A stretch of 63,751 bases of DNA, filler included, from Octopus bimaculoides (lineage: Eukaryota), in NCBI RefSeq assembly GCF_001194135.2. It is 9 parts of 8 records of this genome, joined end to end, with 100 filler letters (N's around TTAATTAATTAA, not from the genome) between each part and the next. Parts side by side here need not be neighbours in the genome. Positions count along the whole stretch, not along the records: positions 14,705 to 20,092 come from NC_069009.1; 8 more parts are not named here. One strand, given 5' to 3'. A model generated the notes under the pieces. The model was not told the origin of the DNA, did no database searches, and was given only the letters and a program-made list of their open reading frames with translations. Of the stretch, positions 15,310-19,404 are shown in pieces; the stretch's first letter is position 1; each line of letters begins with the position of its first letter. Both the position numbers and the translations under genes were made by a program.

Positions 15310-15608
15310 GTTTCTCTCCTGTATGAACAAGTTTGTGTTTAGTTAGGCTGTTGTTCTTCAAAAATGATTTACCACATATCACAATGATACAGATTTTCTC
15401 CTGTATGAATACGTTTATGAACATTTAAGTCTGCCTTTCGAGAGAATCATCTCCTGCAGATATCACACTCATGTGGCTCCTCTCCCGTATGAATAAGTTT
15501 GTGCAAAGTTAATCTGTGATATTGAGTGAATGATTTACCACAGATATCACACTGGTATGGCTTCTCTCCTGTATGAATAAGTTTGTGTCTATTTAATGGA
15601 CTAACATG
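15310..15608 (-). pseudogene. Inverted, disabled partial copy of C2H2 fingers 8-11 of the neighbouring gene
   Basis: Reverse complement aligns to 17656-17956 with 12 substitutions and one 2-bp deletion; TCA>TGA stop. Confidence 0.95.
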
Positions 15609-16953
15609 ACTAACTAAATGCCTCTCCCAAGGTTTAATTGTCTATCCTATTCATGCTATTCAGTATTATTCTGCGCTTGGGAATTAATCTTTTCCATATC
15701 TGTATACTTCAATGTATCTCAACGTTTCTAAAACAGTTAACTTTGTTTACATAGATCGTAATATATATATATATATATATATATATATANNNNNNNNNNN
15801 NNNNNNNNNNNNNNNNNNNNNNNNNNNNNNNNNNNNNNNNNNNNNNNNNNNNNNNNNNNNNNNNNNNNNNNNNNNNNNNNNNNNNNNNNNNNNNNNNNNN
15901 NNNNNNNNNNNNNNNNNNNNNNNNNNNNNNNNNNNNNNNNNNNNNNNNNNNNNNNNNNNNNNNNNNNNNNNNNNNNNNNNNNNNNNNNNNNNNNNNNNNN
16001 NNNNNNNNNNNNNNNNNNNNNNNNNNNNNNNNNNNNNNNNNNNNNNNNNNNNNNNNNNNNNNNNNNNNNNNNNNNNNNNNNNNNNNNNNNNNNNNNNNNN
16101 NNNNNNNNNNNNNNNNNNNNNNNNNNNNNNNNNNNNNNNNNNNNNNNNNNNNNNNNNNNNNNNNNNNNNNNNNNNNNNNNNNNNNNNNNNNNNNNNNNNN
16201 NNNNNNNNNNNNNNNNNNNNNNNNNNNNNNNNNNNGTGCGTCAAGCGCAGTTTGAACATTAGAATAGGTAAAATGATTCAGCCAGATAGTGTTCTGCTTT
16301 AAATGCCAAACAGTTAAATATCTCCTCTGTCTTACTCTGTTATTTCTTTCTTCTTTCAGAATAGCAAATGACATTGGCATCAAAGAATTGGTTGCATCGA
16401 GGTACATCATCTTTTAAAGACTAAAAGAAAATGTTCTTCATATAACGAATCTTTGGTGTCTTACAGTGAAATAGTTCTTTGGAGCCGAGACAATTTGTAA
16501 TAAGCAGCAGCAGGTCTCTTCTTCACTGACTTGAATGTTTATGAGAAGATTAATTAGTCATTCTAACAAAACTGGACAGACATATTCTGTGTGTGTCTGT
16601 CTGTCTGTGAAAGAGTTTGCAGCATCTTCAAACATTGGCAATGACCACAATTGATAAGAATCCTTCAGGCGCCCATACCAGATGATTCTTCTCTGCTATG
16701 TGTCTGATATATATTTTTGGTTTTATGCAGCAAACATCTATATGAGTGGATCTGTGAAGGCCAATATCGCAGTATTCAACATTCTAACAAGACAGCTACA
16801 TTAAGTTGGATGTAAAGATATCCTTTTTGTACTAAAACTGGCTGTGTTGCTAATAATTATCTTTTGAAAAGAAATATATTTATTAGGATCAATATATAAA
16901 AAGAACAGAAACAAGGAAAACACCTGTATATTGTAGAAAAGAGGAGGAAAACT

Positions 16954-19404
16954 ATGGAAGGAAAATTATGTAATAACGCATCTGTAAAGACTGATGTTGT
17001 TTGTGATTTAAAGGAAGAGGAAGGAGAATCATCATACCAGTGTGATGTCTGTGATGAAGCATTCTCTGAAAGAGATAGCTTGATTAAGCATAAATGTATT
17101 CATGCAGGAGATAAGCCATATTCCTGTGATATTTGTGGAAAATCATTCCGTCAAAATGAACACTTAACAAGGCATAAACTCACTCATACAAAAGATAAAG
17201 CTTATCGCTGTAATATCTGTGGTACAGCGTTAGCTCAAAAATCCAGCCTAAATAAGCACATGCGTATTCATACTGGAGAGAAGGTATATTGCTGTGACAT
17301 CTGTGGTAAGTCATTCTCTGATAACAATGTTGCAACTGAACACAGGTATACTCATACAGGCAAAAAACCATATGAGTGTGATATCTGTGGCCAGGCATTC
17401 TCTAAAGTAGGAAATTTAGCTAATCACAAACAAATTCATACAGGGGAGAAGCCACATGAGTGTGATATCTGTAGGAGATCGTTCTCTCGAAAGGCAGAGT
17501 TAAGTGTTCATAAACGTATTCATACAGGAGAAAAGCTGTATCACTGTGATATCTGTGGTAAATCATTTTTGAAGAACAGCAACCTAACTATACACAAACG
17601 TTCTCATACAGGAGAGAAACCATTTAAGTGTGATATCTGTGATAAATCTTTCACACATGTTAGTCCATTAAATAGACACAAATTTATTCATACAGGAGAG
17701 AAGCCACACCAGTGTGATATCTGTGGTAAATCATTCACTCAATATCACGTATTAACTAATCACAAACTTATTCATACGGGACAGGAGCCACATGAGTGTG
17801 ATATCTGCAGGAGATCATTCTCTCGAAAGGCAGACTTAAATGTTCATAAACGTATTCATACAGGAGAAAATCTGTATCATTGTGATATCTGTGGTAAATC
17901 TTTTTTGAAGAACAGCAACCTAACTAAACACAAACTTGTTCATACAGGAGAGAAACCATATCATTGTGATATCTGTGATAAATCTTTCACACAAGTTAGT
18001 ACCTTAACTAAACACAAACTTGTTCATACAGGAGAGAAACCATATCATTGTGATATCTGTGGTAAATCATTCACTCAAAGCCAGGGATTAACTATGCACA
18101 AACGCATTCATACAGGAGAGAAGCCATTTCATTGCAATATCTGTGGTCAAGAATTCACTCAGGGCTCTGGCTTAAATCGACACAAACGTGTTCATACAGG
18201 AAAGAAGCCACATCACTGTGATATATGTGGTAAATCATTTTCTCATAATAGTTCTTTAAAAACTCACAAACGCACTCATACAGGAGAGAAACCATATCAC
18301 TGTGATGGCTGTGGTAAAACATTTCCCCGTAATAATTCTTTAACTACTCACAAACGCATTCACACAGGAGAGAAACCATATCGTTGTGACACCTGTGGTA
18401 AATCATTCTCTGTTGGTAGTATTTTAAATAAACACAAACGCACTCATACAGGAGAGAAACCATATAATTGCAATATTTGTGGTAAATCATTCACTTATAT
18501 TCAGTGTTTAAAAATTCACAAACGCCTTCNNNNNNNNNNNNNNNNNNNNNNNNNNNNNNNNNNNNNNNNNNNNNNNNNNNNNNNNNNNNNNNNNNNNNNN
18601 NNNNNNNNNNNNNNNNNNNNNGGTAAGTCATTTCCTGGAAATAATGTACTGACAAATCACAAACGTATTCATACAGGGGAAAAACCACATCACTGTGATA
18701 TCTGTGGCAAATCGTTCTCTCAGAGAGGTAACTTTATTACACATAAATCAATTCATACAGGTGAGACGCCATATCATTGTGAAATCTGTGGTAAATCATT
18801 CTCTGACGGCAGTTATTTCACTAAGCACAAACGCATTCATTCAGGACATAAGCCATACAGCTGTGATGTTTGTGGTAAATCGTTCTATGAATCTGTTCAT
18901 TTAACTAAACACAGACGTATGCATACAGGAGAGAAACCATATCACTGTGACATCTGTGGCACCTCATTCTCTGCACACAGTAACTTGGCTAAACACAAAC
19001 GTACACATACAGGGGAGAAGCCATATCATTGTGATGTCTGTGATAAATCATTTTATGCAGCCAATCACTTGAAAATTCACAAACGTATTCATACAGGTGA
19101 GAAGCCATATTGCTGTGATGTCTGTGGTAAATCATTCTCTGAAAATGGTGTTTTAACTAAACACAAGCGCATTCATACAGGAGAGAAGCCCTATCATTGT
19201 GACATCTGTGGTAAATCATTCTCTATAGGTAGTTACTTGACAGTTCACAAACGTATTCATACTGGGGAAAAACGATATCACTGTGATATCTGTGGTAAAC
19301 TATTCTCTCATAGCAGTAACTTCGTTAAGCACAAGCACACCCATGCAGGTGAGAGCCATATCGTGAAGCCTGTAGTAAATTCTTCTCACGTGGGAGAGCA
19401 TTAA
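16954..19404 (+). CDS. Tandem-array C2H2 zinc-finger protein (at least 27 fingers, TGEKPY linkers, no KRAB or SCAN domain visible), single coding exon with an internal assembly gap
   Basis: 816-codon ORF with 28-aa periodic CxxC-x12-HxxxH; 18 fingers before the gap (18530-18621), 1 partial plus 8 after; in-frame upstream stop at 16897. Confidence 0.93.

Follow-up and report, generated by a model that had tools for sequence, protein, structure and literature searches.

Intronic editing-complementary sequences, such as those of the GluA2 Q/R site and of Drosophila Syt1, form duplexes that are short and imperfect and lend site selectivity to the RNA-acting adenosine deaminases (ADARs). They are conserved, pair around the edited site and keep editing high (PMC5705066). 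In tandem clusters of C2H2 zinc-finger genes, truncated gene fragments with stop codons and frameshifts lie beside their parents. Hairpin-RNA loci, which yield endogenous small interfering RNAs (siRNAs), have both arms in a non-coding locus of their own, from which they act in trans. In Drosophila, such loci are inverted duplicates of young, fast-evolving genes that form long hairpins (PMC10317233, PMC10292708). Hyper-editing follows the long near-perfect intramolecular duplexes of neighbouring inverted repeats, such as primate Alu and octopus repeats, and octopus combined an exceptional genomic potential for long double-stranded RNA (dsRNA) with a hyper-editing signal that was the strongest of 19-21 species (PMC5625713). 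Here we analysed a window of 63,751 nucleotides from Octopus bimaculoides (assembly GCF_001194135.2; nine genomic parts joined by filler), in which positions 14705-20092 (from NC_069009.1; hereafter the piece) carry a C2H2 zinc-finger gene and, upstream of it and in inverted orientation, a copy of ~300 nt of its fingers 8-11. All positions count along the window unless a comparison locus is named.

We consider it probable that this upstream fragment arose recently as an inverted partial duplicate of fingers 8-11 of the same gene, and that it has no function and is an incidental former of dsRNA. It belongs to two known kinds, pseudogene fragments and dsRNA-forming inverted repeats. Like the inverted-repeat pairs subject to hyper-editing, which are uncommonly abundant in octopus genomes (PMC5625713), it presents two opposed copies of ~300 nt about 2 kb apart, probably in one pre-mRNA; those pairs, however, consist of two transposon copies, whereas here a live coding exon faces a fragment of the same gene. 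With the classical editing-complementary sequences it shares a putative intron-exon complement and an A:C pair at a codon of interest, but it would form a 300-bp, 95% duplex that derives from a recent duplication and is visibly decaying. The Drosophila hairpin-RNA loci resemble it in being inverted duplicates of young, fast-evolving genes with a long hairpin, and differ in that one arm is here the target exon itself. Unlike most C2H2 pseudogene fragments, finally, it lies antisense in the putative intron of its parent and hence has potential at the RNA level.

Predicted pairing between the upstream copy and the coding exon

Global alignment of the reverse complement of the upstream copy with the exon gave 287 identical columns out of 301 (95.3%), with 12 mismatches and one 2-nt deletion, the latter in the upstream copy. 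The complementarity of about 95% given in the original prediction is thus confirmed, as is the added similarity to the duplicated fingers 6-7, which was weaker (two inverted pairs, 88% and 90%). The inverted repeat search resolved the main match into two arm pairs, 15373-15608/17656-17891 (236 nt, 96%) and 15310-15379/17887-17956 (70 nt, 94%). The exon arm extends from the helix of finger 8 to finger 11 plus its linker, and the remaining fingers pair with the upstream arm at 72-77% only. The arms are spaced by 2047 nt, 446 of which are N of estimated number, and their spacing and orientation place them among the inverted repeats as defined in PMC5625713 (at least 65% identity within +/-2 kb).

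When the two arms were cofolded, an energy of -498.7 kcal/mol was obtained, and the gain relative to the separately folded arms was -380, as compared to -9.7 +/- 3.1 for shuffled arms; since the gain lies so far beyond that of shuffled arms, the pairing is not a matter of chance. The upstream arm also cofolded with fingers 4-7 (gain -237 kcal/mol) and 12-15 (gain -197 kcal/mol). We removed the gap to build a model pre-mRNA of 3.1 kb, in whose minimum-energy fold the upstream arm made 290 pairs, all of them with the exon arm and in register, and the predicted ~300-bp duplex with the coding exon therefore stands as far as geometry is concerned. G:U pairs account for three of the 12 differences at the RNA level, and 9 true mismatches and one 2-nt bulge remain. 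A near-perfect duplex of ~290 bp would form in this model if one RNA carries both arms. The proposed mismatch of A17918 with C15348, which falls in the finger 11 codon for helix position +3, was likewise borne out by the alignment. The features of the locus are listed in Table 1.

Table 1. Features of the zinc-finger gene, the upstream inverted copy and their surroundings (window coordinates).
Feature	Position	Strand	Evidence or remark
Candidate upstream non-coding exon ending CAACAG, followed by GTAAGATA; donor GT 14814-14815	14752-14813	+	One paralogue, in L001
Putative intron with inverted fragment, (AT)n run and assembly gap	14814-16359	+	Candidate donor 14813/14814 and conserved acceptor
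Left copy of perfect 14-nt direct repeat TCTATCCTATTCAT	15145-15158		Right copy 15641-15654
Left arm of perfect 19-nt inverted repeat ACAATTAAACCTTGGGAGA	15212-15230		Extends to 30 nt at 87% (15207-15236)
Dead inverted copy of fingers 8 (partial), 9, 10 and 11; upstream arm of potential duplex	15310-15608	-	95.3% to 17656-17956
Right arm of 19-nt inverted repeat (15623-15641), abutting right copy of 14-nt direct repeat (15641-15654)	15623-15654		
(AT)n run (15761-15789), then assembly gap (15790-16235; N, estimated length)	15761-16235		
Polypyrimidine tract, TTTCAG/A acceptor (AG 16358-16359) and start of next exon	16314-16435	+	Conserved in family
C2H2 zinc-finger open reading frame, 816 codons (putative frame), 25 intact finger matches, inner N gap	16954-19404	+	zf-H2C2_2 E=2e-141
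Internal tandem duplication, 336 bp (4 fingers)	17416-18087	+	17416-17715 vs 17752-18051, 89%
Exon arm of potential duplex, fingers 8-11	17656-17956	+	Alignment, cofolding, model pre-mRNA fold
A opposite C15348, sole A:C mismatch; codon AAC (N322), finger 11 helix +3	17918	+	5' neighbour is A
Second assembly gap, within array	18530-18621		Stated length breaks 84-nt finger register
Decayed C-terminal fingers	19345-19513	+	Three-frame translation; 160-nt instead of 168-nt spacing

Decay, age and origin of the fragment

Translation of the minus strand of 15310-15608 in the frame of the exon revealed a TGA and then a 2-nt frameshift, while the fragment still scored as zf-C2H2 and zf-H2C2_2. The homology ends sharply at both 15310 and 15608, within a helix on one side and within a TGEKP linker on the other. 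The fragment thus shows what is expected of a duplicated pseudogene fragment, namely 95.3% homology to its parent, an in-frame TGA (opposite 17816), a 2-nt deletion and truncation at both ends, and we conclude that the upstream copy is a truncated, disabled fragment of 3.5 fingers.

The parent array contains an internal duplication with units at 17416-17751 and 17752-18087, and the inverted copy crosses the junction between the two units, matching fingers 8-11 far better than any other register. Since it crosses this junction, the fragment is younger than the 336-bp duplication, and on the alignment its source is either this exon or a near-identical sister outside the piece, in both cases after the duplication. 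We polarised the differences between the arms with the internal duplicate (fingers 6-7) as outgroup. Four substitutions were assigned to the exon (17683, 17707, 17782, and 17901), three of them non-synonymous, and three to the fragment (opposite 17816, which created the TGA, and opposite 17915 and 17918), together with the indel. Within this locus, the similar rate of drift in both arms means that there is no sign of selection for pairing. Moreover, as the outgroup places the change at 17918 in the fragment, the A:C mismatch is a decay product of the dead copy. A further five of the 12 differences lie within 12 nt (17749-17760), in finger 9 at helix positions +3 and +6 (V266 and N269), and were treated as unpolarised because the outgroup registers p-336 and p+336 disagree, with conflicts at four of these five sites. 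Patchy gene conversion, or selection on the contact residues of the live gene, could have given rise to this cluster.

The fragment is bracketed by a 19-nt inverted and a 14-nt direct repeat, each of which was matched by none of 1000 dinucleotide shuffles, showing that the junction scars are non-random. For comparison we used eleven Octopus zinc-finger loci (L001-L011), amounting to 278 kb from three species and containing 31 arrays, and neither junction repeat recurred in this set. No poly(A) or A-run was present at either end of the fragment, and no fitting target-site duplication was found, the left copy of the direct repeat sitting 151 nt away from the fragment. Differences of the A>G type in sense orientation accounted for only one of the 12, showing no bias. 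A retrocopy of an edited RNA is ruled out by the missing poly(A) and A>G bias, and a processed (retro-)pseudogene was likewise rejected, as there is no A-run and the direct repeat does not flank the left end. We also discarded a transposon with terminal inverted repeats and a captured gene fragment, for which a duplication abutting both 19-nt arms was sought and not found, as well as a high-copy transposon in the flanks, which had no copies in the Octopus loci. The inverted-repeat unit had no further copy in the 278 kb either, a small sample and thus a weak test, and a low-copy element with terminal inverted repeats could still have carried the fragment. Neither a known RNA family nor a tRNA-derived SINE was detected in the piece, and for a 43-aa open reading frame inside the fragment and a 57-aa one in its flank no exact products are on record. 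The short repeat patches suggest templated insertions from a template-switching repair event of the fold-back type.

Inverted duplicates of zinc-finger sequence were also encountered elsewhere. The comparison loci contain 48 inverted pairs (at least 150 bp and at least 85% identity), 22 of them spaced by less than 5 kb and nearly all made up of non-genic repeats, in agreement with the dsRNA potential described for octopus (PMC5625713). Four pairs have zinc-finger sequence on both arms, one in L001 and three in L010. The pair in L001, from O. bimaculoides, joins an orphan fragment of three fingers to an array 14 kb away, in inverted orientation and at 88% identity (15519-15772 vs 29691-29944 of that locus). 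Those in L010 measure 0.9 to 1.7 kb and include a head-to-head duplicate, at 85-88%, of a whole O. sinensis gene with its acceptor segment (175-1849 vs 5267-6936 of that locus; 1.7 kb, 88%, 3.4 kb apart). Both orphan remnants of one to three fingers and whole-gene inverted duplicates occur in these loci, and the recurrence of such pairs indicates that inverted local duplication is routine in Octopus zinc-finger clusters. The pair described here is the youngest and closest zinc-finger inverted pair that we saw. The orphan fragment of L001 sits within the span of a multi-exon zinc-finger gene and represents a second case of the same class.

Probable intron placement, predicted editing and competing readings

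Whether the two arms can meet in one RNA depends on the 5' structure of the gene. The segment 16314-16435, which reaches ~40-80 nt past the TTTCAG, was found at most 1.2 kb upstream of 18 of the 31 arrays from the three Octopus species, on the same strand, and conservation of this acceptor implies an intron that reaches upstream. The family duplication unit evidently includes a 5' splice acceptor ~400-600 bp before the finger reading frame. Upstream of the fragment, 14752-14826 is 79% identical over 75 nt to positions 7251-7178 of L001, with the similarity stopping 9 nt past the GT, and the counterpart in L001 precedes, by ~3.7 kb and on the same strand, a zinc-finger gene of O. bimaculoides (403 aa) that has an acceptor segment of its own. 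This exon-like segment, with CAACAG followed by GTAAGATA, was shared with only one comparison locus, and it is the sole donor-bearing conserved segment in the piece. From these alignments the fragment is probably intronic and on the transcribed strand of the gene, and we lean towards co-transcription of fragment and exon.

Neither arm is touched by the gap at 15790-16235 that separates them. The upstream arm ends 181 nt before it and the exon arm starts 1.4 kb after it, and as the region is non-coding no reading frame is at issue. An (AT)n run forms the end of the left contig. In Octopus paralogues the same conserved acceptor is closely preceded by an (AT)n(GT)n microsatellite, and this microsatellite is probably what the gap contains.

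An A:C mismatch is a favoured context for ADARs; one A:C among twelve mismatches is at chance level, and its location in a contact codon is a post-hoc selection. The exon arm contains 110 adenosines, 89 of which lack a 5' G and 79 of which are recoding, including those of all eight zinc-ligand His codons (CAY>CGY, Arg). Since these His ligands are among the recodable sites, heavy editing would disable fingers, not retune one contact. Recombinant ADAR1 and ADAR2 of squid show no selectivity when they deaminate long perfect duplexes (PMC10278661), and with a near-perfect duplex of ~300 bp promiscuous rather than site-selective editing is to be expected. The short, imperfect, site-selective duplex that characterises editing-complementary sequences was not found, as the duplex at this locus spans ~300 bp with 9 true mismatches. 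In squid, ubiquitous editing sites fall in introns and 3' untranslated region repeats, and neural recoding sites in coding sequence (PMC9068888).

The original prediction proposed the fragment as a candidate editing-complementary sequence for ADAR recoding, with an Asn to Ser change at a base-contact residue. If functional, it would be an intronic element through which ADARs recode fingers 8-11, notably by N322S, and thereby diversify DNA-binding specificity. The complementarity, the favourable A:C mismatch with its 5' A neighbour, the probable intronic position on the strand of the gene, the dominance of the duplex in the modelled pre-mRNA fold, and the very high ADAR activity of octopods (PMC5625713, PMC9068888) all speak for such a role. 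A long near-perfect duplex, however, predicts non-selective editing, in which 79 of the 110 adenosines would recode and all eight His ligands of the arm would become Arg (PMC10278661), the A:C arose in a decaying copy beside a neighbouring change and a stop codon, and the arms drift at similar rates. Moreover, an intronic complement is the established mechanism for exonic editing in mammals and flies; in squid, mature mRNAs are edited, recoding of the substrates tested needs no intron sequence, and part of the ADAR2 is cytoplasmic (PMC7192619), and hence an intronic partner is not the default expectation for recoding in cephalopods. The claim was therefore not upheld, and we regard a functional element of this kind as very unlikely. 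Equally hard to credit is a broader version, in which the antisense fragment is kept as an RNA-level variable cassette, with tissue-dependent ADAR editing that favours N322S, or as a self-limiting dsRNA switch that throttles the gene; if it were true, cephalopod zinc-finger arrays would have in local inverted exon duplication a general means of gaining editable diversity. The hairpin could instead serve Dicer, with endogenous siRNAs silencing the gene itself and cross-reacting zinc-finger paralogues. A modelled near-perfect hairpin of ~290 bp with a 2-kb loop and an upstream arm that pairs with fingers 4-7 and 12-15 as well would suit this, and Drosophila hairpin-RNA loci are linked to young genes that they silence (PMC10317233, PMC10292708). 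But one arm is the target's own exon, so that processing would destroy the mRNA precursor and not regulate in trans, and the fragment shows decay; this outcome, too, seems most improbable.

Two further readings concern the setting of the fragment and not its function. If the left contig (14705-15789) had been misplaced or flipped during scaffolding, the fragment would not be inverted to the gene, or not lie beside it at all. A gap of estimated length does separate the arms, and further gaps occur in the assembly, a scaffold of the short-read style. The copy differs from the exon at 12 sites and by an indel, on the other hand, and is thus no fold-back chimera of the same reads; the order and orientation of the scaffold are favoured because the left contig has an (AT)n end of the microsatellite type that paralogues carry before the acceptor and contains, on the strand of the gene, an exon-like segment with a GT donor. 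We give an artefact only a small chance. Alternatively, transcription may start downstream of the fragment, or only the minus strand of the fragment may be transcribed, for example from a divergent promoter. No RNA complementary to the mRNA would then be made, the fragment would be inert as RNA, and any effect of the repeat would be confined to DNA, where it could serve inversion or other recombination as a substrate. It is consistent with this that the upstream exon was recognised from one paralogue, and that the minus strand of the fragment is sense zinc finger and not complementary to the mRNA. Conservation of the acceptor (16358-16359) in 18 of the 31 arrays argues in the opposite direction, as does the position of the sole donor-bearing conserved segment upstream of the fragment, and we judge this reading to be unlikely, though less so than the other rivals.

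We thus favour a young, non-functional inverted duplicate that forms dsRNA incidentally. Most likely, ~300 nt of the exon were copied in reverse during local repair, by template switching or fold-back, in an octopod C2H2 cluster that duplicates fast, and the inverted copy would have come to rest probably in the 5' intron of the gene and hence be co-transcribed. In pre-mRNA from an ADAR-rich tissue the hairpin would be edited promiscuously on both arms, or be processed or retained as dsRNA. Its effect would be incidental and probably mildly harmful, with no selected recoding switch at N322. Several observations weigh against this explanation. Simple neutral decay does not account for the five mismatches that cluster in finger 9 (helix positions +3 and +6), and the combination of 95% identity and 2-kb spacing is tighter than in any zinc-finger inverted pair of the 11 loci. 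The candidate upstream exon is supported by a single paralogue, and a coding exon is an unusual arm for a duplex, hyper-editing being rare in coding sequence (PMC5625713). Finally, that the fragment has no selected function is argued from absence.

Should the hairpin form in vivo, the locus would be a clean natural test case, in which the paired fingers 8-11 can be set against more than 20 unpaired fingers of near-identical composition as built-in controls. It could show how strongly a long intron-exon duplex drives ADAR editing of coding sequence in an animal whose editing activity is extreme, and whether such editing is tolerated, selected or harmful. More generally, the locus illustrates how rapid local duplication of octopod zinc fingers litters introns with antisense gene fragments, which add to the high dsRNA potential already reported for octopus genomes.

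Parent gene and neighbouring repeats

The parent reading frame encodes a C2H2 protein with repeated C-X2-C-X12-H-X3-H units and TGEKP-type linkers; residues 1-525 scored 452.9 bits against zf-H2C2_2 (cut-off 40) and 285.1 bits against zf-C2H2 (cut-off 25.2). As it is open over 816 codons, the gene is under selection now or was so recently. The frame is putative across the second gap (18530-18621): the finger starts that flank this gap are 225 nt apart, which is not a multiple of 84 (225 mod 84 = 57), and the stated length must therefore be wrong. At the C-terminal end, finger 28 is frameshifted, the reading frame ends at 19404, and one further degenerate finger, with its first His changed to Tyr, and a stop follow in another frame. 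The parent gene was not found in the protein collection searched. Long queries drew mainly generic vertebrate zinc-finger proteins, scoring being limited to the 8000 candidates with most words in common. A short N-terminal query returned many zinc-finger proteins of Octopus sinensis, O. bimaculoides and O. vulgaris, the paralogues being only 43-62% identical, and among the candidates scored no near-identical protein was found.

The arrays of the comparison loci were 70-75% identical to the present array at the DNA level. L011 was considered as the orthologue of the 403-aa gene in L001 and ruled out, as the identity was only 72-74%. Dispersed repeats in the flanks of the gene (14752-14826, 19563-19677, and 19856-20091) match comparison loci; the two in the 3' flank are 73-80% identical to O. 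bimaculoides and O. sinensis loci and contain two similar 'AAACCAGCC...GGCC' units without a tRNA or Rfam match. In O. sinensis, a stretch of ~10 kb (positions 10055-20186 of L009) contains 98 C2H2 finger matches, all on one strand; it is annotated with a 143-aa product and represents either a giant array or several unresolved genes.

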